Below, in pieces: positions 2,541 to 63,656 of a DNA stretch of 64,000 nt. Within the stretch, counting starts at the first letter, position 1, and the number at the start of each line of letters is the position of its first letter. The notes below the pieces were generated by a model. It made no database searches. It had not been told where the DNA came from and saw nothing but the letters and a program-made list of their open reading frames with translations. Source of the stretch: Adineta vaga (lineage: Eukaryota; Animalia; Rotifera); the NCBI GenBank assembly GCA_021613535.1, contig CP075496.1:1-64000 (forward strand), written 5' to 3'. Both the position numbers and the translations under genes were made by a program.

Positions 2541-2708
2541 GGGTGGGTGTGTGGGTGTGGGTGTGGGTGTGGGTGTGGGTGTGGGTGTGGGTGTGGGTGT
2601 GTGTGTGTGTGTGGGTGTGGTGGGTGTGGGTGTGGGTGTGGGTGTGGGTGTGGGTGTGGGTGTGGGTGTGGGTGTGGGTGTGGGTGTGGGGTGTGGGTGT
2701 GTGTGTGT
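2541..2708 (+). repeat. Telomeric repeat tract, G-rich strand (GGGTGT)n
   Basis: ~28 units; directly abuts the hammerhead-containing retroelement 3' end at 2709. Confidence 0.97.
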
Positions 2709-2714
2709 TCCAGC

Positions 2715-2759
2715 AGCCATGACGCGTTTCGAACCCGCTACGGTTCTCATCAGATGGCT
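2715..2759 (-). ncRNA. Minimal type-I hammerhead ribozyme, intact
   Basis: Minus strand AGCCAT-CTGATGA-GAACC(gtagcg)GGTTC-GAAA-CGCGTC-ATGGCT: 6-bp stem I, 5-bp stem II, palindromic stem III, GUC cleavage triplet. Confidence 0.93.
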
Positions 2760-7717: not shown

Positions 7718-10700
7718 TCAATGTTTAGTTGATGAAAATTTCAAACGTTTGATTTTCATCTGTTTGTTCAATAGCATATATTGTTTTGGACGTTTATGAA
7801 TCAACTCTTGCTTACCATCTCGACGATTTCGATTGCCAACAACCATTCTAACTGCCATTGCCGGTGTATTCTGGAATACGTTTCGGTATAATTGATGCAT
7901 ATCTCTTTTGAACGAAGGAAATCGTTTTTCATGTGTATAATGAATAAAGAAGCGATCTTGCAAATGCATTACATTTTCACGCTTTGTAACTGTTGAATCA
8001 TCTGGTTGTTCATCATTTGCATCAGCTGAAGCTATACTTTTGGTCACTTGTGTTTGACGAATCGTGGGTTGAGCCAACATTTTCTGACGTAATAGGCAAA
8101 GTTGTGTCGTATCTGTGATAAGTGACGAAAAAGAGTTGATATTGATATATTCGAGCATATATTTATAGAATTTATCATTAATAAATGATGAAGAATAACT
8201 AAAATAGATTTTTCTGATGTAATTTCATTGATTTTGTTCTAATAAGGAACGAAATGCTTACCCATTATACAATAACATGAGTTTTATTTCTTTTTGTTCA
8301 CAATGAAATGCCTCCAATGTTGATGAATATCGAATAGCTCGTGCCAAGGCAGTTTGGATAACGTTTTGGTATACATATGGATGATGATCGGATGTAAATG
8401 GTACCACATATGGTTCTGCACTTGGTTTATGATAAACTGATGTTAAAAGAACACCATCACTATTTGTTAGAACTATATCTAGAAATGGAAGACTTTGACT
8501 AATTTTATAATCTAATTTAATATTTGGATGCCATTGATTTGCTTCATCTAATAGTTTTCTTAACTGTTGTTCAGATTTATTCCATGTCATGAAAACATCA
8601 TCAATATATCTATAAGAATTATAATTAATGTTTCTATATTCTATGATATTTACCTGCCAAAGAATTCACTAGTAATATCTTGATAACGAACCAATTCCTT
8701 CTGCCATTTCCACATAAATATATTAGCTAATGTTAAAGTAAATGAAGAACCCATTGCACCACCTGTTGTTTGCTTATAGATTTTGTTGCCATAGACAAAT
8801 ACATTTTCTTTAATTACTATCGAGGCCAGTTTCCGAATGGTATCAAGTGCAATTCCTTTCACTTTTCGATAACCATGGACATAAAGAAATTCTACCAGAG
8901 TATTCAATGCTTCTTCCTGTGGTAACATAGTATATAAATTATGAATATCAAAAGTACAGAATAAAGTTGATGGTTTAAAAATGTCGGTTCTGATATATCT
9001 ATTGATTCGTTTGATTAAATGGGCACCATCGATAATAGTGGTAGTATAACAATGTTTATCAAATATAGGACGAATAATCTTATCAAGAAAATCTGATATT
9101 TTTGTTGTTGGAGCACGAATTGTATTTTCAATCGGTCGAACTGGTATATTATTCTAAATACAAAGAAGATGTAATTATAATTATTCCGAGATAGCTATTA
9201 CTACACCTTATGTGTTTTAGGATTGAAATATAAATGAGCTAATTCACATTTGGTTCGATTAGGCATCATTTGTTCATATTGCCATTTTAAAACGAGTTTT
9301 TTTGAATAAAAAGTGTTAAGTAATTGAATAACTTTATTTAAAATTTCATTGAATGGATTCTCTGTTAATTCTATGAAGGCATTTGTATCAGAAAAGAACT
9401 TTTGACCTTTCTTTTCAAATTCACTTGCTAAACCAATATAGAAATTATGACCTTTATCAGTAAGACGTATAACAAGATGATTTTGTTGAATCTTCTTTCG
9501 GATAGATGCAACAGTTTGTGCTTGTTTATGTGCTTCGATACGATCTTTATATGGTATAGATGAAAAATAACATTGTTGAAGATAATCAAGAAGTTGATCA
9601 GAATATTCTTGAAAAATAGACACTGTTCTTGGTATACGACAAAGTTTGACTAGATAATCTTGAACTTTAGTAAAAATATCGTTATGTTCATTTTTAATTA
9701 TAGTTTCTTGTTGTTTTCGAGAACAAAGTGCACTTTGATTTAGTCGAATAAATGATGGACCTATAACAATTTGATTAATTCTAGTCAATGTCAAATCTCA
9801 CTGAATGCAACAAATTCTACCTAGTTTTAGATAACTCCATTCAAGTGTAGTAAATGGATTCGACATTAAATCGAGATATGGTTCAGGTGAAACACCAATC
9901 ATATTCTTTGCTACAGATGAACGTTGACGATTACGACGCAGTTTTCTTCGATATAATGGCATTCTATTCAAAATATCTTGTTTTAATTGACTGGTACGAT
10001 ACGTCATATACCGGTTAATATCATTTACAATATTACCATTTGCTGTATATGTAGCAGTTGATGCGACTGATGTTAATTCTTCTAATATTTGTTGATATTG
10101 ACAATCATATTCTTGTAATTTAACTTCATAGCTGGTTAAAAATAGATGTAACCATTGACGTTTTGCTTCCTGAATGATTTGTAATCGTTCATTTTTCAAT
10201 CGAATATTTCTTTGTTCATTATTCATGGTTATAGGCATAATAGGTGAAATAAAATTTTCCAAATGATCAAAATTGGGTGGTAAAAATTGACAGATGATTC
10301 GCATTTCTAGCATTAATTGTTCTTCCCATACTTCTACTTGTCGTTGTCTTATTGTAATTAATTGATCTAGGATAACAGCAACTGGAGAATGAACAATTAT
10401 AGTTTCATATAAGTTTTTCTGTTCCATATCAACCTTAAATTTAATTATTTGATTTTGATTTCTTTTCGATAAATATTTTCGTTCGAAATCAACATATTCT
10501 TTCAAACAACGATCAATTCGATCAAAGGATATTGGCAGAATTGGACATAAGGTAGATTGTTCATATAATTTAATAGCATACTGTTCCATCATGCTTTTTA
10601 AGTGTGCTATATAATTGATAAGATACTCTTGGCATATAACAAAATCGTTACTTTTTGCTATCAGATACAATTGTTTCTTTTTGTTTAAATATAAAAGAAA

Positions 10701-11423
10701 GAAAAATAATAAGAAATTATCATGAATCAAATGCGTAACTTACTGGCCATTGATGTTGTTCACGTCCAATATTTAAATATAATTCCCATAATTCTATATC
10801 AGCTTTCAAACAATAATACCGATCCAATAGATCTAAGCGTCGATGAATAAATATTTGTAGATCTTTTTGCTTTACAGAATAATTTAACTTTTTGCTTAAC
10901 ATTTGAAAAAGTATTATAGGTGACCGTTTCAGATACATTGGTCTTCTATAAATAGAAATAAGTATATATGTTATGAATAAATAATAAATAAATATATAAA
11001 TATAAACCGATATTTCATATTGGTCGAAGGAATATTCTCCCTGATCATATGCATTTCTGCTGTGGATTTCCTATTGTCTATTTTCTTCTTTGTTGATTGA
11101 GCAACTGACGATGAACTAGTTGATTTTGATATTGCTGAAACCGAAGTTATTTCTTGTAATGATATATCTCGTTTCCTTTTATTTAAATTTGTTGGTATTG
11201 TTGTTATGGTATCAAAAACAATACCATTCATAATATCTTGGATATAATCATTCATTCGATTATTTTGACTATTGATTTGTCTTCGTTCATTGATTAATTT
11301 TTCAATTCTAGATGATTTCATTCCACGTTTACGACATTTTCTTCGAAAGCATTGATTTTTTCGATTACCATGACATTTCTTTCGTCGTCGTCGTCGTCGT
11401 CGTCGTTCATTAGTAGTATCCAT
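7718..11423 (-). CDS. Athena (Penelope-like) reverse transcriptase with N-terminal basic/coiled-coil region, 7 exons, ~1118 aa, apparently intact
   Basis: Exons 11423-11008, 10945-10744, 10676-9821, 9760-9207, 9153-8654, 8609-8262 and 8198-7718 splice in phase (the 10677 acceptor is the least certain); motifs DKG, YFNPKTHK, RPI, FCTFDIHNLYT, GGAMGS, RYIDD, LPFLD, YHKP; no C-terminal endonuclease. Confidence 0.92.
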
Positions 11424-12940: not shown

Positions 12941-14353
12941 CTAAGAAATAGTTGAACGTTGAACTAAAGTTTGTTGTATTTTATATTTATAGATACATTG
13001 TAGCCGTTCACTTATTATTTGACAACGTTGATCGATTAGTTGAACCATCGTTTGAGATATGTTTTGATTACTATCACCTGCGTGATAATTAGACCACATA
13101 TTTTTCACTAAATCATTATATTTCTTTGTATATTCTTCTTTTTCCTCTTCCATTGAGTTCATATAAATCTGGAATAATTTTGTTTGTGATTGCAAAGCAA
13201 TCTCTTTGTATCGATTTGAAAGATATTCTCGTTTGTCAACATTTTGAATTGAATTAATTAATTCTGATTGAGCTATGGGTGTTTTTTCAAATGATTGACT
13301 TGGTAAATTGTAATAGATGATTTGTTGGTTCACTAAATGATATTCTTGTTCTATAAATTCTTGTGCATATTTCGTCTGACATAATTCTTTCATGAGTAGA
13401 ACCTAGAATGTAATATAGATAAAACTAACAAAATAATTTTAAAGAGTAGTAATTTACTCGCCTGGTATTCATTTGGATTATGTCGAAAGTATTCCAATTT
13501 CAATGCTCGAATTTGATAATCGTAATGGAGAAGTTCAATTTGATGTTCGATATCACTACGAAAGGTTTGTAGATTCTTTTCAATATATACTTCAATCAAA
13601 TTTTGGATTGTAAAGGAATAACCAGGATAATGATTGGCTTTTGTGTTCATTGCACATTGATATGCTTTCAATTGACAATCCAGTTTATGTATGTGTTTAT
13701 TAACAAAATTATATTGAACTCTTTTTTCTTCAGTTTTATCTATATTTTTCATTGGTACCATTGATTTGACTTGTGTTGGCCACATTGAGAAATTCATAGC
13801 ACAGATAGATTCTGTTTGTTGTATCTGAGGAAAAAGTTGTCCTGTACCAGATTTAAACAAAGATGTCCAGAGATAATGATATGTTTGAATGATCATTATT
13901 TTGTAAATTAGGATAATAATTTCGATTAATTTGTCTTTATCATTACTTGGAATCATTTGGATAGTTGTCGATTGTATTTGATTGAGTAGTTGTTGAAAAG
14001 GTGTATGCTGTTCCATTAGATATCTGGGGATTTCATTATTTTAGTCTTCTGATCTGCTATTGAGAATTTTTTGTGAGCAGTTGTTAAATGCATTGACATT
14101 TGTTTAATTGGCTAAAAATAGAGAGATATGTATGTTTTTTAAATCATGAAATGTGTTCAAATAGAGTGACCTGCACTTGTTCTATCTGCTTTTCTGTTGT
14201 AGTAGAAGTTTTAATATTCCATGGAAGATCAATTGCCATTTTTTCGAATACCATCATCGTATTGCATTCATCCATATTTGCAACAGTACTTGTCATTGTA
14301 GTACGATGTGCCAATAAAGGTGATCCAGTGAGGGTACGATTAGGTTTCTCCAT
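12941..14353 (-). CDS. Stand-alone coiled-coil ORF (Athena ORF1-like), 3 exons, probably frameshifted near 14030-14100
   Basis: LWTSLFKSGTGQL...MWP motif shared with the CC ORFs at 21-26 kb; GC-AG intron at 13403-13461. Confidence 0.7.
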
Positions 14354-19079: not shown

Positions 19080-21017
19080 CTATTGAGCTAAGAGAGTATT
19101 AGATGAATAGCAATGTTTAGTTGTAAGACGAATTTGTAGGCCTGCTTTTTGAAAACTAGGATCTTGATTAAGAATCGTAGACCAAATGTGATAAAATTTC
19201 TGATTAAATTCATATCTTCCGCCCCAATCATATAAATAATAGAATTCAATGGAACGATATTTTTGTTGTTGTTCTTCTCCTAATGTATATTTTTGTTCAT
19301 TGAAATATTGGAAGAATTGAGTACGAAATGAATTGTATTGTGTTCGATTGAGATACAATGAATTTTGAGATGGATAGAATCGCTGAAGAAATTGTTGTTC
19401 AAGATATTCAATAAAATCCAATGAATAACCATTGGCAAGAAATGTTAATTCAATTTGTAGTCGTTCTTCTTGAAAATCAGCTAGAAAAGAACAATAGTGA
19501 ATAGCACGTGCAAGTGCAAATCGAAACCATTGCCGATGAGTAATTCTTGGATGTTTGCTTGCATATGGTAATAGAAAGAATTGTTTATGATTAATATCAT
19601 GATAAACACATGTCATTAAACGTCCATTGACATTTTCAATATATGCATCAAGAAAATGTACATAACTACCACTTGATTCTGTTAATTGTACGTCTGGATG
19701 TTGTTCATTCAATTCAAGAATACATGTACTGAATGAGTCCGTTGAATTGTTCCATGTCAGAATACCTTTTTGATGATATCGTCCATAGAATCCATGATTC
19801 AAACGAACAAGACGAACAAGTGGTAATTGCCAATATTGCAGATAAATATCAATTAATAATTCTATTAAAGGTAAGTTCATTGGACCACCACGACGATATC
19901 GATAGATTTTTTTTCCATCATAGATAAACATATTATTGGATAAAACTAAACCAACTAATTCCATAATGCGAATAACTTTTGATTGATCTTGAGGCTTGGT
20001 AGTATTGAATTGATGATCTAAGAAACGTTTTAATGTATTGAGTAAATCTGTATGTGTTACTCTTGTTGATAAATTATGAATTTCATATGTAATAAAACGT
20101 GTATTTAATGTAAAAGAATCACTTTGTGAAGTAAACTGTTGTAGTTTTTGTATAAAATCAACACCATTAATTAATTTTGTTGATTGAGCAAATTTCTCAA
20201 ATAATGGTCGTAAAAAGTGATCAAGATATGTTGATAATTTGTAGATAGGAGACTTGAGACATGATGAAAGTCTTGGCTTTACTAACGTATTATCATCGGA
20301 CGGTTGTGGTAAAAAATAAAGATATGATAATTTCATTTTTGATGAATCATTAATATGAAATTTTTCTAAATATTCCATCGATATAAGACGTTTCAGTTCC
20401 AATTGATTCAAAGTCATATTGAATGTTTTTATTATTTGATTTAAATGCTGCTCTTCTGAATTCAATTCATCAATAGTATGAATCATTTCATAACAATTCT
20501 GATTATTTTCCATATAATTCAAAGATTTCATTTGGAATTCGATTCGATCACCAAGATAATATGTATTATAGTCATCTGCAGTTCGTTTGAGGATTAGTTG
20601 ATCTTTTTCTAATTGATATTGAATTGATTGAATGACTTCATTTTCATAACGAACTCGTTTTTCAAGTGGAACAGATATAGGTTGTGTAAATGATTTGACA
20701 AATTCTCGTTCGATTTGTCGTCGAAAAGTACTTTGACGTTCACGATCAATAGAATATCGATTGAAAAGTGTTGTTAATTGTCGACGAAGTGGCATAATTT
20801 GTTTGGTAAGAATTTGACCCATTGTTGTTGATGATGTTGATAAGAGATGCATTTGACATGGTATGACATAGCATGGTCCACGATTGAGAAATTGTAGTTG
20901 TTCATAAGATAGATGATGTAATACATTTTGAAACATACTTGGTGAACAATTAATATTGGAGAAAAGGCTCCGACGGTTCAAATCGAGTTTTTGACCGTCG
21001 GAGCATTGACGAAAAAA
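19080..21017 (-). CDS. Catalytically dead Athena RT homolog B (intronless), translated by -1 frameshift from the upstream CC ORF
   Basis: RT-fold motifs are colinear with the active RT, but motif A reads ITYEIHNL and YIDD is replaced by YHQK; long open frame (646 aa). Confidence 0.85.
   Translation of the reverse strand, partial: FFRQCSDGQKLDLNRRSLFSNINCSPSMFQNVLHHLSYEQLQFLNRGPCYVIPCQMHLLSTSSTTMGQILTKQIMPLRRQLTTLFNRYSIDRERQSTFRRQIEREFVKSFTQPISVPLEKRVRYENEVIQSIQYQLEKDQLILKRTADDYNTYYLGDRIEFQMKSLNYMENNQNCYEMIHTIDELNSEEQHLNQIIKTFNMTLNQLELKRLISMEYLEKFHINDSSKMKLSYLYFLPQPSDDNTLVKPRLSSCLKSPIYKLSTYLDHFLRPLFEKFAQSTKLINGVDFIQKLQQFTSQSDSFTLNTRFITYEIHNLSTRVTHTDLLNTLKRFLDHQFNTTKPQDQSKVIRIMELVGLVLSNNMFIYDGKKIYRYRRGGPMNLPLIELLIDIYLQYWQLPLVRLVRLNHGFYGRYHQKGILTWNNSTDSFSTCILELNEQHPDVQLTESSGSYVHFLDAYIENVNGRLMTCVYHDINHKQFFLLPYASKHPRITHRQWFRFALARAIHYCSFLADFQEERLQIELTFLANGYSLDFIEYLEQQFLQRFYPSQNSLYLNRTQYNSFRTQFFQYFNEQKYTLGEEQQQKYRSIEFYYLYDWGGRYEFNQKFYHIWSTILNQDPSFQKAGLQIRLTTKHCYSSNTLLAQ
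20967..21017 (-). promoter_or_regulatory. -1 programmed ribosomal frameshift signal B
   Basis: Slippery T_TTT_TTC, 6-nt spacer, 11-bp hairpin GCTCCGACGGT/ACCGTCGGAGC. Confidence 0.85.
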
Positions 21018-22435
21018 CATACTTTAAGATCATAGAGAGTTTGAAGACGTTCATCAATATTTTTAAAACGTTGTTTCATAATATGGCACATTTGTTCAGT
21101 AAGTTTTCCATCGGCTAAATAAGCACGTTGTCGTTGTTCAAATTGTTTATATTCCATATCAAATCTTTGTGTATACTCTTCCATTTTAGCTTCAGCTGTT
21201 CGAATATGAATTACTAACATGTCAGATTTCGTTCGTTCTAATAATTGTTCATAACGATAGATTAAACGTTGTCGAACATCTTTATCTTGAACCGTTGTTA
21301 ATGTTAATGGTGCTGGTATTCGAACAGTATGAAATAAATCAGAATAATGCTGATGAGCAACACGTTGTTTCAATAGAGCAACTTCCATTGTAGCCGTTTC
21401 TTTATTTAATTTACTTTGAGAAAGATTTTCAAATATTTTAAGCTAGAATTAAGAAAAAGAAAGAGATATCTAGTTAGTAGGAGAAAGAAAAAGTATCGAA
21501 CTTACTTGATCAGCATAGTAAGTTTCATGATGAAAATCAGATACAAACAATCCATCATAATAATCATATTTAATTATTGCAATTTGACTTTCAATGAATA
21601 TTTGATGTAATGCGATTCCATATTCTTGAACATAATTTTTGATTGTTTCATTTATTTCTGATGTAAAACGATAATTCAATTTTACTTTGCAATCATTTAG
21701 TTGACTTTCAAGAGTTCGAGATTGTTTTCGTAGATCAGTCAATTTTTGTGAAACATAATTAGAACATGTTTCATAAGTTATTTGATTGATTTGAGTACTG
21801 TTGTGGTTAGGATCGGCCAATATAATTGATTTCAATTTTTCTGGCCAAATACGAAGTGGTGTCCGTGTCGTTGTATGAAGTATTGTAGACATAGATATTT
21901 GCCATACAGATGGTTCAGTATTAATCAATTGACCTGTACCTGAATGTAAATAAGTTTTCCAAAGTGAAACATGTAAATTGAGTAATGCCAATTGATGTTC
22001 AAGATATGCAACTTGTCGTAAATCTTCTATTGTTAAATTACTTGTATTTGCTTGAAGATATGGATGCATAATTTGTTCAAATGTTTTACTATCATTTAAT
22101 AAATAATCAGGCATTTCATCTGTTGTTGATATGGGTTGAATCAAGTCACTTTTTAATTTTTTCATAATTGATGTTGGTGATGAAGGTGTTAATAATGGAC
22201 GTTTTGTTGTTGTTGTTGCTGTCGTTTGTTCATTTGAAGGCGATAGTTGATTTAATTTCTGTGATAAATGTTGTTCAGTATCATTATTGTCATTATCATC
22301 ATCATCACGATTGTTAGAATTTTTACTAGGATTGGTAAAGTGTTCTAAAAAATCAATATCTAGATCATCTTTTTCATCCAAATCATCACCATAATCATGA
22401 AAGATATCATCGAAACGATTTAATTCGCCTGACAT
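20978..22435 (-). CDS. Coiled-coil ORF B (Athena ORF1-like), 2 exons
   Basis: In-phase intron 21443-21505; ends FFVNAPT overlapping RT-B in the -1 frame. Confidence 0.8.
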
Positions 22436-22661
22436 TTCTTTGTCGAAGTGTTAATTAAAATCTAGAATAAAAAAGAAAGATCAAATGAAAAGAATAACAA
22501 ATAATTTTCTTGATTAAAATGATATATAAGTTGATTATATTTTACTTTGAAAAGAAAAGATTAGAAAAAAAACATGCACAGAAGGTAGAAGCAAGAATCT
22601 AAATAAAAAACAAAACAAAGGATAAGTAATGATTGAGAATAAGATGTTCGAAAACTTACAT

Positions 22662-24696
22662 TTAAGCTTGATTATTGAAATGTTGTTGAACCAAAAGAGT
22701 ATATGATGAATAGCAATGTTTCGAATTTAAAATAATTTTAAAGCCATTTACTTTCACTTTAGGATCTTGATTAATAATTTCAGACCAGAGCTTATGAAAT
22801 TGTGCATTGAATCGGCAACGATTGCCCCAATCATACAAATAATATAAAGAAATCAATCGATGATTTCGAATGAGTTGTTTTTCTTCATCTCGAACCGTTT
22901 TTTGTTGTTGTACATAGCGAAGTAATTGTTGTCGAAGACCTATGAACTGATCTTGATTTAAATGAACATTCGTTTGATTGGTAATTGTATATCGTTTGAA
23001 AAATTTGCGTAGATGATATTCAACAAAATCCAATGAATAACCATTGGCAAGAAATGTTAATTCAATGTATTGTCGTTCTTGTTGAAAATCTTCTAAATGA
23101 GTACAATATTGACCAGCACGTTGTAGAGCATAATGAAACCACTGTCGATGTATTAATCGTGGATGATCATAAGCATAGGGTAATAAAAATAATTGTTTCA
23201 TTGGATCATGATAGACATTTGTGTATAATTGACCATTTTGATTTTCAATATAAGCATTTAAAAAATAAGCACTTTTACCAATAGTTGTTTTTAATTTCAG
23301 TTCAGTTGGTAAAGAAATTTTGATTTTATTGATTACATGTTGTAGTTTTTCTTTTGTACCATTCCAAGTAAAGAAACCCATATTATGATAACGTGCATAG
23401 AATTCGGTTCCAAGACGAATATCTCGAATCAATCGAATTTGCCAACGATGCATATAAATACTACCTAAGACTTCTGCGAATGATAAATTCAATGGACATC
23501 CTTGAAGATATTTATGAAGTTTTTTCTCATAAATAAAATAATTATTTTGTAAAACGATTTTTGCTAATTCTTCAATTGTATCGACTGTAAATTGAGCAAA
23601 TCGACCAGTCAATGTTTGACTGCGTAAGAATTGATTTAAAGCCAATAATAAACTTGAATGGGCAATTTGAGAATAAAGATCAGGAACTTCAAATGTAACA
23701 AAATATGTATTTGCTGTTAGATGATTTGCTTGTTTACAAAAATAAGCCAGTTTTTGTATAAAATCACTACCATCATTCATAACTGTTGCTTGACAACTAC
23801 TTTCTAGCATTGGTCGAATATATTCATCCAGATACATAGATAATGCATAGATTGGACTTTGACGACATGATGAAAGTCTTGCTTGTAATAAAGAGATATC
23901 ACCATTCTAAGTAGAGAAGAAGCAAAATGGAAAGTTAATTTAGGAAAAATAACATTACTTGATTCATTTCTGGTAGAAAATACATGTATGGTAATTCGAA
24001 ATTTGTTTTTTTACCAAGACGAAATTTTTCGAAATATTCTTCTGTAATCATTTTATTTTTATATAATTTTTCGAAATTAGAATCAATTGATTTGATAATT
24101 TCATTGAGTTGTTGTTCTTTTGTAGAATTAATTTCATCGATAACACATAATAATTTATAACGTTTTGAATTTTGAATATAATATTCAGCTAAGTTGTAAA
24201 AATCTTGTGTTGAACCAAGATAATATGTATTATAATCATCTTGGGTTCGTTGTAAGATTAATTGATCCTGTCGAATTTGTTTTTGTATTGATTCAATTAA
24301 TTGTCGTTCGTACAATGTACGTTCTTTAACAGATGATGGTAATGGTACAGAAAATGATTCCAAGAATTCTTTTTCAATCATTTGATTAAAATTCATTTGT
24401 CTTGAAATATCAATTGAATGTTTTTTAAAAACTTTTGCTAATTGATGTCGTAATGATGTCATTTGTTTGAAGACGATTTGATTTAACATTGAATCAGTTG
24501 GAATTAAATGCATTTGACCTGGTGATACATATGTTGGACCACGTTGAAGAAATTGTAATTGTTCATCAGATAAATGATGTTTGGCATTTTGAAACATTGT
24601 TGGTGAATAGAACAGAAAGGATGATTTGTGATTAGAAATAATGCTCCGACGGTGAATCAAATCTAATTCATATCCGTCGGAGCTTTGACGAAAAAA
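22662..24696 (-). CDS. Catalytically dead Athena RT homolog A, 2 exons, reached by -1 frameshift
   Basis: Intron 23907-23958; motif A FVTFEVPDLY; YIDD replaced by YHNM; clearly paralogous to RT-B. Confidence 0.85.
24643..24696 (-). promoter_or_regulatory. -1 programmed ribosomal frameshift signal A
   Basis: Slippery T_TTT_TTC, 6-nt spacer, 10-bp hairpin GCTCCGACGG/CCGTCGGAGC plus an inner TGAAT/ATTCA stem. Confidence 0.85.
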
Positions 24697-26217
24697 CGTA
24701 ATTGTATTTTGTAAATCGTTAAAATCCGTTGACTTTGATTTGTAAAACAACGATTCATAATATCACACATGGTTTTTGTTAATTTTTTATATGTTGGACC
24801 ATGTACTTGATCAGCTTTAAATTGTGCCATATCATTATTAAATTTCTTTTCAGTTTCATTCATCTGTACTTCCATAGTAGCCAGTTGAACAGACGTCATA
24901 TCAGATATCGTTCGTTGCAAAATTTTATCATATCGTTCAATTAATCGTAAACGCATATGTTCATCTGTAATAGCATCCAATGCTTCTGGTCTCGGTAAAT
25001 CAAATGTTCTAATATTATCTGGTAAATAATTATGAACAATACGTTGTTTTAACATAGCTACATCCATTTTTGTTGTTTCTTTTGCTAAATGAGCTTGTAA
25101 CAGATTTTGAAATGTATTGATCTGTAGAAGAAAAACAGAACTTATAAATACTAATATAAGAAATTGATAACATACATGATCTTGAAATGGATTTTCTCGT
25201 TTAAATTCCCATTCCAATGCATGATCAGTATAATGAAATTGAATTCGAGCTATTTCTTGTTCAATTCGAAGACGATGTCAAACAATACCATGTTGTTCAA
25301 CAAATTGATCAATTGTTTTTTCCATTTCCGAAGTAAAATGTGGATGAATCGTTTGTTTCAAGTGTTCTAATTGACCTTGATAATGTGTTTGTTGGATTTG
25401 TAATTGTTCCAATTTTTTATGCACATAACTTAAACATGCTCGGAGATCGACTGTTTCCATGTCAGCCGAAGTAGTACTAAGACGTTCTTCTTCAACCATA
25501 CGCATTTTTACTTCTTTTGGCCAAAGAGGAAGATGAGTTTGTGATTCTACCTGTTTTTGATTGACTTTCAAGTGACCCATACCAGATTGTAAATAAATTG
25601 TCCAGAGTGTTTGATTGAGATCAACTAATGCTAATTTATGTTTTAAAATAGCAATTGATCGCAATGTTTCCATTGGTAAATTAATGCCTGATTGTTCAAT
25701 AATAGGAACAATAAAACGTTCAAAAAATTTACTCTTCAATGATAGATATTGCGGTGCATCATCCACTGGTTGTTCTATTACCACTTTTAATTTTTTTGGT
25801 GCTGTTGCTGCTCGTGTTGGTGTTGATGGTGTTAATACTGGTCGTTTTGTTCCACTCGCTTGTACTTGTTGTTGTTGTTGTTTGTTGTTGTGATGCTGAT
25901 AATTGACGAAATTGTTGTGATAAACGTCCTTCTTCTTGTGGAATAGTTGTAGAAGCAGCAGCAGCAACAGGAATTGTTTCATCCAATTCATTGGATTCCA
26001 ATTGTACTGGAATAATTTGTTCGTTTCGACCAAAATTCATAAAATGATAATCAAAATCAACAGGTTGATCTTCATTTTCATCAGCATCATCATTTTGACC
26101 ATGATAAATATCAAGAAATCGATTGATTTCACTACCACCCTATAACAATGCAGAAATACAAATGAATTAAAAGTATATTAAGAGAAAAAAACATACTTTT
26201 TTATTTGAACCAGCCAT
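24663..26217 (-). pseudogene. Coiled-coil ORF A, 3 exons, with a +1 indel (~25882) and an in-frame TGA (25278-25280) in this copy
   Basis: Introns 26140-26196 and 25122-25175; colinear with CC-B across both lesions. Confidence 0.75.
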
Positions 26218-26339: not shown

Positions 26340-27335
26340 CTAGTGTATTAATGGTGAGCGAACTAAAAAGAGAAAGACAAAGAAACGTACAGCAAAAAGA
26401 AAATTGAAGTGTGAACTTACAAGATATGATGGTCCAATGATTGAAGCTAATTTAGTTGTTGCAAAACAATCATTCGTGGCATAATTGATTAATTTTAATC
26501 GTTCTTGATTTTCTTTTTCTGTTAATGATGATTTCATCAGACGAATATCCAAGCCAATTCCCCAATTACTGACTGTAAGAGATTTATCCAAAAATTCTTC
26601 CAGAACATTGGCTACAGCTCTTTGTAAAGCCCATGGGTTATTCTGTTGTTTGTAAGGTCGATGAGAACATGTACAGCTTGGATCATCTTCTTTGTCTTTG
26701 ACTATGGCCATAGAACAGTAGGAATCATGTGGATATGTATCATTGTACCAATATTTGAATTCATCTTGTACATTAATGATTTCTAACTGATGTAATGGTA
26801 TGCATTTAAATAAGGGATAGATATTAAATTTGATTAACTCTTTTTTTTCATTTCCCCATGCAAATAATGTTTTCGATGGATGAAATATGGTGTTGATTAG
26901 CCGTTGGATTTGTAAATAAATTGGTGATTTGATTGATGGCATATGAAACATTTCAAATACAATAATATGTTTCTTTTGTTCATTTTTGTCACTTTCTACT
27001 AGAGATGACACAAATTCTACTTGTATTAAAGCTGGTTGTTTTGAAAAGTCATCAATTTCTGTGTCCACAGTAAAATAAGCTGTTCGATGAGCCAATTCCC
27101 GTAATCGAATAAGACCAAAGAAAAACGACATCGAATTAATAAATATAAGTTCATATGTTTGTTTATATGAAAAGATTGGTAATTGACGACTTAATTCTTC
27201 ATTGAGTTGACTTTTTTTCTTATTATGATTCCATTGTCGTTTTCGTTGTTGTAAAGTTTTCGATTTTTTCTTCGAGCTTTGTAGAACATCAAGTAATGAC
27301 ATGAGGACAATTTCATCATTAATTAATGTAGCCAT
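26340..27335 (-). CDS. DEDDy 3'-5' exonuclease (RNase D/WRN-like)
   Basis: ExoI motif FTVDTE, ExoIII motif YATND, FAWG; the true C-terminus is probably cut at the GTAAGT donor at 26420. Confidence 0.82.
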   Translation of the reverse strand: MATLINDEIVLMSLLDVLQSSKKKSKTLQQRKRQWNHNKKKSQLNEELSRQLPIFSYKQTYELIFINSMSFFFGLIRLRELAHRTAYFTVDTEIDDFSKQPALIQVEFVSSLVESDKNEQKKHIIVFEMFHMPSIKSPIYLQIQRLINTIFHPSKTLFAWGNEKKELIKFNIYPLFKCIPLHQLEIINVQDEFKYWYNDTYPHDSYCSMAIVKDKEDDPSCTCSHRPYKQQNNPWALQRAVANVLEEFLDKSLTVSNWGIGLDIRLMKSSLTEKENQERLKLINYATNDCFATTKLASIIGPSYLVSSHFNFLFAVRFFVFLFLVRSPLIH

Positions 27336-27535
27336 TTGATTGATAAAGTAGAAAATTCGAGTTTAGAGTAAGATTTGTGAAATAATCTAGAATAAAAAGC
27401 GAGAAAGAAAAATGATAATATAAGATTCAAATGAACTGATTATATGAGATATGAGATATAGTTGAAATGAAAACATGCATGTATGAATAAAAATGAAAGT
27501 TCGATGAGTTCTGTAAATGTTGATTGATATCTTCT

Positions 27536-28298: not shown

Positions 28299-29927
28299 TT
28301 AGTTATCTTGAGGATGGCATAGATTTTCACACCAAACACCTTGATTTACAGGAGTTCGAAGAGGATATTTGAAAATATGACCTAATTTATTCAGTTTTGC
28401 TTCAGTATGTGTAACAAATAACGAATGAACAATTTGACGAAATGTTTCCGATGAATTCGATGGTAAAACAGCAATCATTGTTGCTGTATAAACATTATAT
28501 CGAATATCATTAAAATTTTCATGTAATTTATATTGAAAGAATTCATATTGTTGATGAAGTTGTTGTTTAGTAAATTTAAAACCTTGTGTTGGTGGTGGTA
28601 CATTATTAACTAGTTGTTGTATGTGTTTATCATACTTTTGATGTTCAGTTGTTCCTAATTGATATTGTTGATTTGCTTGATGAGCGAGTGCATTTGATAC
28701 TGGAACAAATATCCAATAACTGTCGTTAACATCCAGAAATGATTGGATTGCACTTGAACAACGTTTTGGATGTTGATACAGACGACAAGAATCTTTTTTC
28801 GTCATATTCAATGTTCTCTTACCAAAGCATTTTTCATAATTTGCCGAACCCATTAACTGTTCAATGATAAGTCGATGAGTAATGGCATGATGAGTTGCTA
28901 AACGTTGCCATAATAGACCACTAGTTTCTCCAATAAAATCATATTCACCACAATGGCATGTCAAAGTATAAATTATATTTTTTGTATTACATGTAGCTGG
29001 GCAATTTAAAATTGATTCATATCCATTAACAAAACGATGTTTTTGATAACTATTAAATTGTACATCATATTTTTGTTGTTTTTTTCTTGGACTACATGAT
29101 GAACATATTTCGCAGGCTATTTGATTGCACCGTTTCATAACATAACGACATTCAGGCATTTCTGAACAGAAAATTCCTTCAGTTTGTGATCGAGGTTGTG
29201 CTTGACGAAATGAACATGTTTTCATATAAAATAAATCGACATCAATTTGTAAATAAAATTCAATTAATTGTTTAAACTCACTATCATTTAAAGTAAGAAT
29301 AATATTAGATGAACGGAATTCTTGTAGAATACGAACATATGCATTTTCACATAATTGAATAACTTTTTTTAATCTTGAATAACTATAATCCAAAAGAGTA
29401 AAACCAATATTGAATCGTTCCATTATGTCTGGTCCATAATATTTATGATAAAAATCTGCTAAATGTGATGCTGTAATAGTAGATGGTTTTTCGATGGGAA
29501 TAGAACATACAATTTTATCTGGATGTCGTCGTGCAACTTCTTTTTCAGATAAGTGTTGTACTGGAACACTGGATAATAATAAAAATACTGTTCGATCAGA
29601 TTCAGAATCGAAAGCCATATCATCATCAACAACAACATTGATATGTTGATTAGATATTTGATCTGACGGTGGATAAATAGGTAAAATTGTTAATCGTTCT
29701 TGATTACATGCTTCCAATGTAAATGGTTGATAAGATGGTTGTGCTAAACCAATGGGTGATGGATTTGCATTGATCATTGATGTAGTTGAATGAGTAGTAG
29801 TAGTAGCAGCAGCAGCAGCAGCAGCAGCATTAAGACAATGTGCATTATCATTATCATCTGATGATGAAGATAATTCGATCAGATCGATTGTACGCTTAGA
29901 AGGATTAGGGCGATGTGAATGTGCCAT
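28299..29927 (-). CDS. GIY-YIG-like endonuclease, copy 1, intronless, 542 aa
   Basis: CPATCNTKNIIYTLTCHCGEYDFIGET...QRLATH, CxxxxCxxC, KLN. Confidence 0.85.
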   Translation of the reverse strand: MAHSHRPNPSKRTIDLIELSSSSDDNDNAHCLNAAAAAAAATTTTHSTTSMINANPSPIGLAQPSYQPFTLEACNQERLTILPIYPPSDQISNQHINVVVDDDMAFDSESDRTVFLLLSSVPVQHLSEKEVARRHPDKIVCSIPIEKPSTITASHLADFYHKYYGPDIMERFNIGFTLLDYSYSRLKKVIQLCENAYVRILQEFRSSNIILTLNDSEFKQLIEFYLQIDVDLFYMKTCSFRQAQPRSQTEGIFCSEMPECRYVMKRCNQIACEICSSCSPRKKQQKYDVQFNSYQKHRFVNGYESILNCPATCNTKNIIYTLTCHCGEYDFIGETSGLLWQRLATHHAITHRLIIEQLMGSANYEKCFGKRTLNMTKKDSCRLYQHPKRCSSAIQSFLDVNDSYWIFVPVSNALAHQANQQYQLGTTEHQKYDKHIQQLVNNVPPPTQGFKFTKQQLHQQYEFFQYKLHENFNDIRYNVYTATMIAVLPSNSSETFRQIVHSLFVTHTEAKLNKLGHIFKYPLRTPVNQGVWCENLCHPQDN

Positions 29928-39390: not shown

Positions 39391-42300
39391 CAGAGATGGG
39401 CACGGTTCGCGGTTTTCACAATTTAAACCGGAACCGAAACCGAGAGAAAGTTGAGTAATTTTGAACCGAACCGAACCGAAAAAAGTGTAAAATTTAATCG
39501 CAGATAACTAAGCTATGTCATCTTTATTTGAACTCGCTTATTCTGTATTAAATTATTATTATCTATTATATTTATGAATATATGTATATAAAACTACATC
39601 TTCGTCAATAACATCTTATTTTATTTTATTTCTGTTCTAAATATTGAAGTTCATATAAATTTCTATCGCACAAAAATGATAACAAAATTATTCGAGCACA
39701 TATATAAATAAACACAAAAAAGCAAAAAAGAGATATAAATAAAATTTCTCAAAAGACTCGAAAACATCTTTTCTTGATATCGTCTAATTGTTTTGAACAT
39801 TTTTCTTTTTATATCTTTCAAATGAATTTTGAAAAATAATATCGTTCACTGTTTCAGGAGATAATCGTGAACGCTTTTTCGTAACAATATTTCCTGCCAA
39901 TGAAAACTCCCGTTCCACTGCAGCACTAGTTGCTGGTACTGAAAAAATACGTTTGGCAATTTTTGCTAAACGTGGATATAGTCTATGATTATGTTTCCAA
40001 AAGTTTAACGAATTGTATTCATCCCCATGTATAGAAGAATTTGAAGAACGTGATTCGTTTTGTTTATCTATTCCAAACTTTAGATAGTTTTCGATTTCTA
40101 TTTGATGTATAGCAGCTGTTGTAGTTGGTACATCATCTTGTTCATCTTCTTCTTCGTAATAACTCTGCATAATTCGAAAAGCTTGATTTGCTTCACCACC
40201 TCGTCGTCTTGTCGATTTGCTGTTGTAACTGTTCTCTTCCGGTTGTTTGTCATTATCAAGTGAATCAAATACAATCATTTCTTGTTTTATATATTCTAAA
40301 CATAAATTTCGTTGATCAATCGTGCATTGTTTCATTTTTCTAGTTCTTGGATTCAAAAATAAAGCCATAAAATGGATAGGATGATAATCGAACATAGCTT
40401 CTAGTAATATTTTTGCACGTTGTCGAAAAAACAATATATCTACAGTGAAAATAATCAAAGTGTTGTTGACATATATAAATCAGAAATAATAAACAATTTT
40501 ACCTCGTTCACTCGATAGCTTCGCATCATTTGACATCCATTCCAAATTTGCTTTTACACTTTCAATACCTGGCACAACAACATGAATAGATGGTATATTT
40601 GTTGATTGTAAACGTGTTGAGATATGTTTCCATGGCTTCAAAAACTCAATAATCTTTTCTAATAAGAAAACGTTGATCTTTTCTAATCGCTTTTTGTCCA
40701 ATTGTCGTTCGTCGAATATTTCATTTAATGGAAGATATGACTTATGCACCGATTCAAGAGAGTTAGACATTGATAACCATCGAACGACGGTGCTTTGCAC
40801 CAACCTTGAAGCTTCTTTATCTTCAAGAGCTTGATTAAGATTTATCTAAAGAAAAGGAAGATAATCGTTTATTTTTAAACTTAAGAATATAAGAAATTTT
40901 ATAAACTACATACGAGTTTTACATATTTAATCAATTGTTTTGCGGACAAAATTAAGGTAATAATACGTTTTGCTCCAGGTGGAATCTCTGATTTCAATAT
41001 GGTCAAATAATTCACTTTCATTGAGATTGAGTTTAAAGTCGCATGAATCACTTTTTGTGGATGATGATGTTGTCGTCGTGGATTTGTTGATGGATGTTGT
41101 TGTAAATTTAAATCATCATTATCATAATCTTCACCTGATTCTTCAGAATCACTCATTTTTTCATCTTCATCTTCTTCTTCGCCTTCATCTTCATCTTGAA
41201 CTTGAGTTTTTGGTTGTTGATTTTTCTTTTTCTTTTCACTTTGAAAGAAAAGTCTTTCAAGGATATTATTCAATCTATGTGCTGAACAAAAAACGACTTC
41301 ATATTCTTGTAATATTTTTTTTATATTAGACCCACGATCCGAAACCCAAACAATATCTTTCATATATCGGATAAGATCATAAATACCTAGTCCTTCTTTC
41401 AATACCTAAAGTTTTAGAGAAAAATGAGATTTGCTTATTAATAGAATAGGAAATTTCAGATTCTCTCACCTTCAACACATTAGGTGCTTTTTTATTCGGA
41501 GTATTAAATGGAATACAAAATATTTCGAACGAATGTAACGTCCAATTATCATCAGTCCAATGAGCAGTACATCCCAAATATGATTGTTGACGATAAGCAT
41601 CTGACCAAATATCAGGTGATACAACTAGACATCGTTCACGTACAGCTTTCAATAAAACGGTTTTTATTTGTTCACGTCCACTAGAAGCATTCGATTTAAT
41701 TAATTTGGAAACGGTTTTTCTAGATGATAAAATTGATTCAGCTTTGATTGGACCACAAGTATATCCTAGACGAAAAAAGATGGTGATATTCAAATTATGA
41801 GTAGTTTCAAGACGACAAGTACCTATATGAATTGCTTCTTCGATTATTTTCTTGAATCCTGTATCTTCAGCAATACCTAATGGACGTATATTCGAACATA
41901 TCCATCCACCTAACAAATGTGTCATTTTTTGCTTATGAGATCCAAAATTCTTGTTGATCGAAGCAGGTGAAGTTTGTGATTTAATTAATTGTGATGAATT
42001 GGTTGATGTTAATGTTGAAATATGAGTTTGCTTTGGGTTAAAACCATCACACACTCGCATATGTTTATTCATATTCCTGGTGCTAGATGAATATGTATAT
42101 GTTATACTGCAATACTTGCACGATACAAATCTATCGTATGTTTCGTTCTCATTTTCATTAGTTTTTCGAGCCGGAATACCAAAACATCGCCAACAATCAG
42201 ATTTTTTGTATTTGATATCAACAACAAACCAATCTTTTTTATTATATTTCAAGTTCGAACTAATAATTTCGGCAGATAAGTGTTGATAAGAACGAGATAT

Positions 42301-42733
42301 ATTTGATGAAGAATTTGATGAAGATGTAGATGGTGAATCAGAAGATGAATTTGTTAGTTGAACATCCATAGAACTTGATGGAGAATCAAGATCAATTACA
42401 TCAGGTGTGTTTGATAAAGAAGAGATATTCATGTTGAATTTTTTTGTATTTGTTTGGTTATCACTAAAAGTACTTCGATACTTTTTCTACATGTGTTATA
42501 CCATTGGCTAGCTCCTTTCATGTTCTTCTTGGACGAAGAAAGTAAAGAAATATATATATATATATATATATATACATTTTCATTGGTATGTACGACATCT
42601 ATTGATTCCTCCGTTTAACTTTTCATTTCTATACACTAATTTCAGTTGCATCAATTCAGCTGAAAACCGAACCGAACCGAACCGAAACCGAGATCGATTT
42701 GAAAAGGTGTGAACCGAACCGTGCCCATCTCTG
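39391..42733 (-). mobile_element. Full-length hAT DNA transposon
   Basis: 18-bp TIR CAGAGATGGGCACGGTTC; 8-bp TSD GTACATTA at 39383-39390 and 42734-42741; subterminal GAACC repeats. Confidence 0.95.
39784..42432 (-). CDS. hAT transposase with BED zinc finger, ~5 exons, apparently intact
   Basis: BED finger (W..F, C..C, H...C), SPDIWSD, VSDRGSN, CSAH, RW, W...YPRLAKIA...PATSAAVEREFS. Confidence 0.92.
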
Positions 42734-43800: not shown

Positions 43801-43847
43801 CACGCACACCCTCACCCACAGCCACAGCCACAGCCACACCCACCCTC
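43801..43847 (-). repeat. Degenerate C-rich telomeric tract
   Basis: cacaccctcacccacagccacagccacagccacacccaccc. Confidence 0.75.
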
Positions 43848-46218: not shown

Positions 46219-46968
46219 ATGGGTAAACTGGACGGAAAAATTGCTCTTGTTACTGGTGGATCGGAGGGTATTGGTTTTGCTACTGCTGAAATATTTGTTA
46301 GTGAAGGTGCTTATGTTTTCATTACTGAACTTCGTAAAGAGTTACTTGATTCAGCAGTGAAACAAATTGGTAGAAATGTTTATGCAATTCAAGCTGATTC
46401 ATCCAAATTAGATGACCTTGATAATGTTTACAAAATCATTAATGAAGAAAAAGAAAAGTAAGATGTACTCTTTGTTAATGCTGGTATTCCTGGTTTAATG
46501 CCATTAGGATTGATTACCGAAAAATTTTATGATGACATTTTCGATGTAAATGTAAAAGGTGCACTGTTTACTGTTCAAAAAGCGTTACCAATTTTAAATA
46601 ATAGGGCGTCGATTACAGTGAATGGATCATGTTTTTCAATCAAAGGAATACCAGCAACGAGTATTTATAGTGCGACTAAAGCTGCTCTTCGTTCATTTGC
46701 TCGTTGTTGGTCTGTGGATTTGAAAGATCGACAGATTCGAGTGAATACGCTTAGTCCCGGCCCTACTGACACCCCACTTTTAAACAACTTAGCTGATACG
46801 AAAGAATCGTCACAGGAAATTCTTGACAATTTCGCGAAAATGACTGTTATGGATAGACTTGCTCAACCGATTGAAATTGCGAATTTCGCTCTATTTTTAG
46901 CTTCTGATGACAGTTCATACATTACTGGTATTGAACTTTTTGCTGATGGCGGTGCCTCACAAATCTAA
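46219..46968 (+). pseudogene. Bacterial-type classical short-chain dehydrogenase/reductase with a premature TAA (46459-46461)
   Basis: TGGSEGIG, (L)DVLFVNAG, YSATK, IRVNTLSPGPTDT, YITGIELFADGG; intronless; same frame on both sides of the stop. Confidence 0.9.
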
Positions 46969-47369: not shown

Positions 47370-47598
47370 TGTGGGTGTGAGTATAGATGTGAGTAATAAA
47401 AAAATACCCACACCCTCAATACGAACTTCTCACTTGTAATGGGTTCAAAAAATGTTAACAAATGATTTCAGGGTATTTTATAAAGGTTTTCCCATCTGTT
47501 TTTGTCAACCGCTGCAAACAAAGGGTGTGGGTGTGGGTGTGTGATATTTATATCGTATCCATACCCACGCCCACCCACCCCACACCCACCCCACACCC
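47370..47598. repeat. Two head-to-head pairs of short telomeric tracts (G-rich then C-rich)
   Basis: G-rich 47370-47394 / C-rich 47406-47415; G-rich 47523-47543 / C-rich 47563-47598. Confidence 0.8.
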
Positions 47599-48400
47599 AG
47601 CACGGACTTTTCGGACAAGGGGATATGTATCCCTCATATGTGGATATTGCCTCAGGCTGATTCCAAAAAAATAGCCAATTAACACAGTTTTATCTATTTT
47701 TCTTGGCCACATAATATCAAGTGTTTTCAATTTTGGATATCCATTAGATTATTGACATTCTAATATTTCTCACGATATTCTTCATTAGTCTAAAAAATCT
47801 CTTTCTGAAACGAATCTCTTTATCGCAACGCTCTCTGTGATCATCCACGTTTTTGTTGTTGAATAAATTGTTCCACAGAAAGAAGTTCCCTTGTAAATAT
47901 CAGATAATCATATTTGCATGATTTATTATTCCATTGATGTAAAATAATTACCTTTCTTCTTGACGTCGAAAACTAGAAATAATTAAATGTTATTCAAAAG
48001 GCAAGAAAATTTTCATGTGTTAAAAAAGAACGTTAATAATGAAACCAAGAGCAGATGGCAAACATTTTTACTACTGAAAAAGAAAGTGGCAATGTAGATC
48101 ATGTAGAATCAGATCTTTTTATCTTTGTGTTACTAATGGAATAAAAAAAAGCAAACGTTTGTTTCAAAGAGTTATGTTCCTGTAAAAGATTACAACGTTG
48201 TGAAAATGAGAATATTCCTGGGACATGTGTGTGTGTGATAATTCTGTATTAAAAGATTCAGAGAAAAATAACTATTCTCTCTGGTAATATGCTCTACTTT
48301 ATCTTTCTACAAAGTCAGTGTTATTCATTCTTCAATGTTCTAAAGATCGTATAGACGGTCCGGAGACGACAAATATCAATTGAATATCGATGATTTAACA

Positions 48401-63143: not shown

Positions 63144-63230
63144 GGGTGAAGGTGTGGGTGTTTGTAACACTACTACATCATTGTATTCGTCTCACACCCA
63201 CTTACATCCACCCACACCCACACCCACACC
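63144..63230. repeat. Head-to-head short telomeric tracts (G-rich 63144-63161, C-rich 63193-63230)
   Basis: gggtgaaggtgtgggtgt ... cacacccacttacatccacccacacccacacccacaccc. Confidence 0.8.
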
Positions 63231-63613: not shown

Positions 63614-63656
63614 GCCATGACGCGTTTCGATCCAGCTACGGATCTCATCAGATGGC
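63614..63656 (-). ncRNA. Minimal type-I hammerhead ribozyme, intact
   Basis: GCCAT-CTGATGA-GATCC(gtagct)GGATC-GAAA-CGCGTC-ATGGC; compensatory A-T to T-A swap in stem II relative to the 2715 copy. Confidence 0.92.

Follow-up and report, generated by a model that had tools for sequence, protein, structure and literature searches.

To our knowledge, Terminons are the largest retroelements known, and we know of no account of how an RNA of 40 kb is copied and attached to a telomere. The open reading frames (ORFs) described in them carry the labels DEDDy, GDSL, GIY-YIG, Rep, CC and TM (PMC6431247, PMC5408684, PMC5537684), and a figure legend in an overview of Penelope-like elements (PLEs) notes that a frameshift accompanied by a pseudoknot can set ORF1 apart (PMC8557442, Fig. 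1). Here we analyzed a stretch of 64,000 nucleotides of the bdelloid rotifer Adineta vaga (positions 1 to 64,000 of contig CP075496.1, assembly GCA_021613535.1; hereafter the window), which contains a Terminon with two paralogous accessory modules arranged in tandem in its middle. Each module consists of an ORF1 and, in the -1 frame relative to it, an ORF2 related to reverse transcriptase (RT), and a predicted programmed ribosomal frameshift site lies at the junction of the two. The RT-like products, hereafter pseudo-RTs, lack the catalytic residues of a polymerase.

The window has a GC content of about 30% and represents a telomeric region of an Adineta-type bdelloid rotifer. It opens with (CACCCA)n and has more (TGTGGG)n blocks inside, its nearest database proteins are those of Adineta and Rotaria, and its minus strand carries nearly all long ORFs from about 2.5 kb to at least 32 kb, the co-oriented ORFs of the element running from about 7.7 to 32 kb. 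The element is a Terminon, a giant endonuclease-less Athena/Penelope-like retroelement attached to the telomere, because the published anatomy (PMC6431247, section 8) matches its telomeric repeats, active RT, hammerhead-type 3' end and co-oriented ORFs. It shares with the described Athena elements and Terminons the telomeric location, an active Athena-type RT on the 3' side and a hammerhead-type motif followed by (ACACCC)n (PMC6431247), as well as many co-oriented, intron-bearing ORFs that include coiled-coil ORFs (PMC8557442; PMC6431247). It differs from them in that the predicted frameshift leads into a dead RT, and in that the structure observed is a plain extended hairpin, the PLE legend mentioning a pseudoknot.

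The signal itself resembles that of HIV-1-type gag-pol frameshifting (U_UUU_UUA and a simple stem-loop): in both, a U-rich X_XXY_YYZ heptamer is followed after a short spacer by a GC-rich hairpin with no obvious pseudoknot, and in both a structural, helical upstream ORF is followed by an RT-related ORF whose product is made (in our case, is predicted to be made) only as a fusion. The differences are that the downstream Terminon product lacks polymerase residues, the real RT being encoded by a separate gene, that there are two modules in tandem, and that a Terminon is a rotifer PLE and not a long terminal repeat element. The frameshift principle and the element are already known. What appears to be new is an ancient pseudo-RT family under selection, a sequence-frozen frameshift cassette and a sister clade with fused frames. 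An earlier, sequence-only reading of the locus had left it to be checked whether any of this had been described, and had overlooked that a frameshift after ORF1 of PLEs was already on record (PMC8557442). A dead RT paralog is not among the Terminon ORFs given in PMC6431247, PMC5408684 and PMC5537684, and we found no description of such a family, the primary Terminon paper and the 2007 Athena paper being outside the scope of this check, so that an earlier description is possible.

The components of the predicted frameshift signal are as follows.

24690-24696, minus strand: slippery heptamer U_UUU_UUC of module 1, in the zero frame of ORF1, followed by the spacer GTCAAA (24689-24684)
24643-24683, minus strand: predicted frameshift-stimulating hairpin of module 1, with the invariant 10-bp lower stem and a 7-bp upper stem (-26.2 kcal/mol, z -5.8)
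21011-21017, minus strand: slippery heptamer U_UUU_UUC of module 2, in the zero frame of ORF1, followed by the spacer GTCAAT (21010-21005)
20967-21004, minus strand: predicted frameshift-stimulating hairpin of module 2, with the identical 10-bp stem and another loop (-23.7 kcal/mol, z -4.3)

In both modules the heptamer is separated from the hairpin by 6 nt, and the lower stem is exactly GCTCCGACGG/CCGTCGGAGC, a GC-rich helix of 10 bp, while the loops differ. The ORF1 stop codon lies within the loop (TAG 24665-24663 in module 1, TGA 20980-20978 in module 2). The stem 10-mer has no further occurrence in the window, and shuffled sequence yields no such pair. The structure is called an extended hairpin because complementarity between the loop and the downstream sequence, scored in six cassettes, was no better than in shuffled controls. 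The sequence-only reading had described the same heptamer, spacer and stem with different loops at the end of both ORF1s, and all of this, including the -1 frame, was borne out, as was the strong divergence of the proteins that flank the signal: identity between the modules amounts to 47-48% for ORF2 and 34-40% for ORF1.

A word search with module 2 ORF2 as the query returned 53 proteins from Adineta steineri, A. ricciae, several Rotaria species and metagenomes, with 26-59% identity to the query (41-59% in the clade that bears the cassette), and 59 loci (denoted by L numbers) were fetched. The cassette is present at 24 junctions of ORF1 with ORF2, which stand for 14 distinct lineages (Adineta, Rotaria and metagenomes) with a protein identity of only 45-60%, and in about 0.45 Mb of fetched loci it is restricted to junctions between ORF1 and a pseudo-RT. 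Across the 14 lineages, conservation is 90-100% over the 25 nt that begin with the heptamer and end with the 5' arm, and 45-80% in the ORF1 coding sequence immediately upstream of the heptamer. U_UUU_UUC is in the ORF1 frame in both modules and in 14/14 lineages. Eight of 11 stem pairs are invariant, pairing is kept in 98.7% of cells, and the changes include one compensatory GC-to-AU (L041) and one GC-to-GU (L004).

The reading frames of the relatives point in the same direction. The -1 frame reaches just 2-22 codons upstream of the slip site before it is closed, and in 5/14 lineages its first ATG lies 40-58 codons downstream of that site, beyond a conserved N-terminal motif. A start codon for ORF2 is therefore not conserved, and independent initiation of ORF2 was rejected as an explanation on this ground; in module 2 an ATG does adjoin the heptamer, but only in the window copy. 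With an in-frame slippery heptamer, a spacer within the range of 5-9 nt, a stable structure and a short overlap, the junction has the makeup of a canonical -1 programmed ribosomal frameshift site, and expression of ORF2 by frameshifting, which the sequence-only reading had proposed, is strongly supported by the comparison of these lineages.

Further evidence comes from a deeper-branching subclade in which ORF1 and the dead RT are encoded in one continuous frame, for example in L036, where 982 codons run without a stop. The proteins of this subclade (L036:2792-5737, L005:10896-12041, L043:2904-3953 and L030:2157-4397) are 30-38% identical to module 2 and equally non-catalytic, and their genes lack the GC stem, the amino acid sequence of the linker not being conserved. 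Because a deeper subclade encodes both parts in one frame, the fusion of ORF1 and pseudo-RT is likely the functional product. And because the subclade without the hairpin has an unconserved linker, the invariance of the stem in the frameshifting clade, which extends to synonymous positions of an AT-rich genome, argues for constraint at the level of RNA. In some fused-frame copies the homologous spot is occupied by a run of T (TTTTTTA), and the slippery site may have arisen from such raw material.

It should be considered whether the GC-rich stem serves mainly a function other than frameshift stimulation, for instance as a packaging or cis-recognition site for a protein of the element, the frameshift being incidental. 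We regard this as rather unlikely. It would account for the fact that the primary sequence of the stem is invariant and not covarying, which exceeds what pairing needs, but not for the position of the stem, always exactly 6 nt after an in-frame X_XXY_YYZ heptamer, nor for its absence where ORF1 and ORF2 are fused in frame. Moreover, the two arms also have to serve as codons (the 5' arm in two reading frames); this hinders compensatory change and may be why the stem is frozen rather than covarying. A recognition role and a frameshift role are compatible and do not exclude each other.

The genes of the two modules are organized as follows.

26197-26217, minus strand: module 1 ORF1 exon 1, with ATG at 26217-26215 and 7 codons; exon 2 continues with homology to the N-terminus of module 2 ORF1
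25176-26139, minus strand: module 1 ORF1 exon 2, broken, flanked by the introns 26196-26140 and 25175-25122, as judged from three-frame translation and tblastn against ORF1 of L001, a divergent relative
24663-25121, minus strand: module 1 ORF1 exon 3, ending at the TAG in the hairpin loop
23959-24696, minus strand: module 1 ORF2 (pseudo-RT) exon 1, in the -1 frame, with the linker and N-terminal domain
23907-23958, minus strand: module 1 ORF2 intron, GT-AG, 52 nt, at a position common to six lineages and missing in module 2-type copies
22662-23906, minus strand: module 1 ORF2 exon 2, with fingers, palm and thumb of RT type that lack catalytic residues (motif A FEV, motif C YHNM); stop included
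21506-22435, minus strand: module 2 ORF1 exon 1, 310 codons, with an acidic low-complexity N-terminus and then helices; followed by an intron of 63 nt (21505-21443)
20978-21442, minus strand: module 2 ORF1 exon 2, 154 codons and the TGA in the hairpin loop
19080-21017, minus strand: module 2 ORF2 (pseudo-RT), 645 codons in the -1 frame, uninterrupted, with motif A YEI, motif B GGPMNL and motif C YHQK

Thus, the earlier claim that both RT frames are fully open holds for module 2 and fails for module 1, whose frame is split by an intron (23958-23907) that contains stops and is not a multiple of 3; this intron had been missed, and so had the damage to ORF1 of the same module. Module 2 is intact throughout. 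Two lesions interrupt ORF1 of module 1: near 25,880-25,860 the reading frame changes inside a (CAA/ACA)n tract, and at 25281-25279 a TGA stands in frame; ORF1 of L001 is one continuous frame there by tblastn. These lesions look recent because the downstream pseudo-RT frame remains open, and one of the two could be an assembly error in low-complexity sequence. In the searches the exons were used singly, and intron-less homologs (ORF1 of L007, ORF2 of module 2) represented the full-length proteins. The intron of the pseudo-RT gene is found at the same codon position in module 1-type lineages (L001, L018, L019-L024, L040, L041), and whether ORF1 contains its intron also depends on the lineage. 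It is odd that a retroelement keeps introns, which would have to survive retrotransposition.

Both ORF2s match the active RT of the window with 30-33% identity (E about 1e-22), and the matches expose the loss of the catalytic positions. Motif A is YEI in module 2 and FEV in module 1 versus FDI in the active RT, motif B is GGPMNL and GCPLNL versus GGAMGS, and motif C is YHQK and YHNM versus YIDD, as the sequence-only reading had noticed for motifs A and C. Among about 45 distinct pseudo-RT copies, all are without the motif A Asp, GGAxGS and YxDD; the residue in motif A is E, K, Q, R, H or T, motif C reads Y[HYQND][NHDT]x, and the formerly catalytic positions vary from copy to copy, so that every family member lacks the motif A Asp and the (Y/F)xDD by which a catalytic RT is recognized. 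Maximum-likelihood analysis places the dead RTs together in a single clade, apart from the active Athena RTs. On the evidence of motifs and tree, the pseudo-RT is an ancient paralog of the Athena RT that has lost the three catalytic aspartates and the motif of the deoxynucleoside triphosphate pocket.

Sequence models of RT do not recognize the family. Pfam gave no RVT_1 match at E below 1 for either ORF2 and no significant family for any of the ORF pieces of both modules and their neighbors; NCBIfam yielded nothing useful, phmmer against the PDB yielded nothing, and a 31-member profile searched against the PDB gave one weak RT match (E 7.6e-4). The AlphaFold2 model built on the 31-member alignment (predicted local distance difference score, pLDDT, 85; predicted template modeling score, pTM, 0.80) nevertheless has a predicted RT right-hand, TERT-like fold. 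Its best Foldseek matches in the PDB are TERTs, first that of Tribolium (3du5_A, E 1.7e-9) and then those of Candida, Tetrahymena and human, followed by DRT2, LINE-1 ORF2p and retron RTs. TERT as the top match of the model is expected because PLE RTs and TERT are known kin, and the pseudo-RT differs from TERT in having neither a sequence-level TERT match nor the catalytic triad. The thumb is the most conserved region of the pseudo-RT (mean majority fraction 0.79 versus 0.52-0.69 elsewhere).

The fold, the telomeric location and the conservation across genera might suggest that the family was domesticated by the host, for instance as a telomere-maintenance factor, and lies in telomeric repeats by happenstance. 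This is very unlikely in our opinion, since the genes are multicopy and are always found among co-oriented Terminon ORFs of variable order and number, and since they have diversified like a family within species instead of being represented by one ortholog per genome.

The pseudo-RT genes are under purifying selection. Pairwise ratios of nonsynonymous to synonymous substitution (dN/dS, Nei-Gojobori) are 0.30-0.55, with Fisher p values from 3.5e-4 to 7e-30, and frames of 620-674 codons are open in many lineages of these AT-rich genomes. In the tree, each module of the window is paired with the L001 copy of its own type (module 1 or module 2), in both cases with 100% support in the Shimodaira-Hasegawa-like approximate likelihood ratio test (SH-aLRT). 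Given this pairing and the divergence between the modules, the duplication is old. Positions 27362 to 12944 of the window and 3 to 14290 of L001 are collinear over about 14 kb, with 43-65% protein identity; together with the pairing in the tree, this indicates that the tandem pair is an old, retained part of the backbone. Other families, such as that of L007, carry one module. The earlier view that the pseudo-RTs are maintained by selection is therefore upheld by a monophyletic non-catalytic family, long frames, the dN/dS values and a conserved thumb.

These data bear on the possibility that the RT-like ORFs are neutrally drifting relics of duplicated Athena units, and that the shared hairpin is a leftover of a recent duplication. 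Such a view could point to the two lesions in module 1 ORF1 of the window copy and to the failure of Pfam RVT_1 to recognize either ORF2, but it is extremely unlikely to be correct. Neutral decay is excluded because dN/dS is significantly below 1, and the long open frames speak against it as well. We also rejected the idea that the stem is shared because of a recent duplication, as the divergence of the modules and their separate counterparts in L001 make the duplication old and as the flanks of the cassette have diverged while the cassette has not.

ORF1 is about 464 aa long. It has no family match in Pfam, and its model has no significant fold match in the PDB. The first 110 residues are modeled as disordered and are acidic and of low complexity, followed by long helices of up to 54 residues, in agreement with the 'CC' label. 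It resembles LINE-1 ORF1p and other coiled-coil ORF1 proteins in lying upstream of an RT-like ORF and in its predicted long helices after a disordered N-terminus. It differs from them in lacking detectable homology or a fold match, and neither an RNA-recognition motif (RRM) nor a zinc knuckle was found in it.

The explanation that accounts best for these observations, and which we consider reasonably probable, is that these Terminon modules are Gag-Pol-like, with ORF1 as the main product and an ORF1-pseudoRT fusion as a lesser one, and that the pseudo-RT is a non-catalytic nucleic-acid-binding subunit. Ribosomes would translate ORF1, and most would stop 10-13 codons past the heptamer, in the hairpin loop. 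The GC-rich hairpin located 6 nt downstream would stall ribosomes, and a fraction of them would slip by -1 on U_UUU_UUC, generating an ORF1-ORF2 fusion of about 1,100 aa as the minority product beside abundant ORF1. Through its ORF1 part the fusion would be recruited into ORF1 assemblies, or into the ribonucleoprotein formed on the element RNA that is used by the separately encoded active RT, and would supply a non-catalytic, probably nucleic-acid-binding or scaffolding module with an RT fold beside this active RT. The proposed use of an RT fold for a structural or nucleic-acid-binding role without catalysis has parallels in p51 of HIV-1 RT and in the RT-like domain of Prp8. However, p51 has the sequence of p66 and is inactive by its conformation, whereas the pseudo-RT has lost catalytic residues and is encoded by a separate, anciently diverged gene; and Prp8 is a host spliceosome protein, whereas the pseudo-RT is encoded by the element.

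Several points weigh against this explanation. ORF1 of module 1 is broken in the window copy; therefore, at least one module is not currently expressed as proposed, and within the window only module 2 is able to work by this scheme. The dN/dS values correspond to moderate constraint, and the covariation support for the stem is thin because the stem hardly varies. In addition, the actual shifting and the low ratio of fusion to ORF1 are inferred, and the part of the fusion as a binding or scaffolding subunit that partners the active RT is a suggestion. So are the fixed low ratio and the roles put forward in the sequence-only reading, namely a p51-like subunit, a template clamp or a telomere adaptor.

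Alternatively, the pseudo-RT could be a regulator, that is, a dominant-negative protein or a competitor that ties up the active RT, its template RNA or the telomeric ends, and thereby limits the copy number of its own element or suppresses rival Terminon families. The preservation of a modeled RT/TERT-like fold and a conserved thumb after the loss of catalysis would suit such a role, and many diverged lineages coexist in one genus. We hold this to be unlikely, since the modules are collinear, conserved, duplicated and retained parts of the backbone, for which a structural role in cis is the simpler fit.

If the Gag-Pol-like explanation is correct, a conserved, selected non-catalytic RT paralog whose amount relative to a helical ORF1 is controlled would provide a concrete candidate accessory factor, and it would be a rare case of an RT pseudoenzyme encoded by an element. 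A bolder, tentative proposal, about which we are doubtful, is that bdelloid Terminons depend on an ancient family of element-encoded, dead RT paralogs with a TERT fold. Supplied by frameshifting in fusion with an ORF1 scaffold, these would be non-catalytic partners that the single active RT cannot do without, for example for holding the very long RNA template or the telomeric 3' end, and the sequence-invariant recoding hairpin would set their stoichiometry. The dead RTs would then be the retroelement counterpart of telomerase accessory subunits. In either case the cassette, with its short, simple hairpin that is sequence-frozen across genera, offers a clean natural test object for -1 frameshifting, and its sister lineages reach the same ORF1-pseudoRT fusion without recoding.

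The genes of Terminon modules are currently annotated as unnamed or 'helix-turn-helix domain' proteins. The gene models P0002, P0003, P0027, P0047 and P0049 (1025-1124 aa), named 'helix-turn-helix domain-containing protein', are long enough to join ORF1 and the pseudo-RT; in models from the frameshifting clade, such joining would need an invented intron across the slip site.

Other features of the element are the following.

7718-10730, minus strand: active Athena-type RT gene in several exons, with motif A FDI near 8991, GGAMGS, and YIDD at about 8608 (motif span 8991-8597)
12941-14016, minus strand: third, stand-alone ORF1 paralog (two ORFs), which ends without a slippery site or hairpin
2541-2753, minus strand: 3' end of the element, with a hammerhead-type motif (2753-2721) followed directly by (ACACCC)n (2707-2541); a second motif lies at 2970-2937

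The active RT gene of the window has no frameshift signal. Its product is related to P0052, which passes Pfam RVT_1, and the P0052 loci (L058, L059) have a messy gene model and are uninformative as to whether active Athena RTs elsewhere use the cassette. The hammerhead-type motifs at 2753-2721 and 2970-2937 have a CUGAUGA...GAAAC core. Rfam gave no family at gathering score in the whole window and none at E up to 1 in the 3' end of the element; because the Rfam hammerhead models gave no score, the ribozyme identity is based on the core motifs and on helix I pairing read by eye. A third motif of the same type, CUGAUGA...CGAAACGCGUC, is present at 63619-63651 on the minus strand, and the first (2721-2753) and third motifs differ by compensatory changes in helix II (GAACC/GGTTC versus GATCC/GGATC), the second being at 2937-2970. 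Together with telomeric repeats at 63211-63228, the third motif marks the 3' end of a second element.

Neither of two more Terminon ORFs on the minus strand, at 28299-29927 (542 aa) and 26340-27335 (331 aa), matches a known family. Both are conserved in the relatives L001 and L007, with a different order relative to the module in L007. The minus strand at 39784-42432 contains ORFs with a BED zinc finger and a hAT dimerization domain, suggesting a hAT DNA transposon in or beside the Terminon. At 43803-43832, 46498-46968, 47526-47543 and 48380-53922, host-like genes, which include a short-chain dehydrogenase fragment and ORFs with low-density lipoprotein (LDL)-receptor class A and EGF-like domains, lie between short blocks of telomeric repeats, an arrangement that fits the reported capture of host genes between Terminon units. 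Finally, an ORF on the plus strand at 59163-59732 matches Transposase_21, a family of the tnp2/CACTA type.

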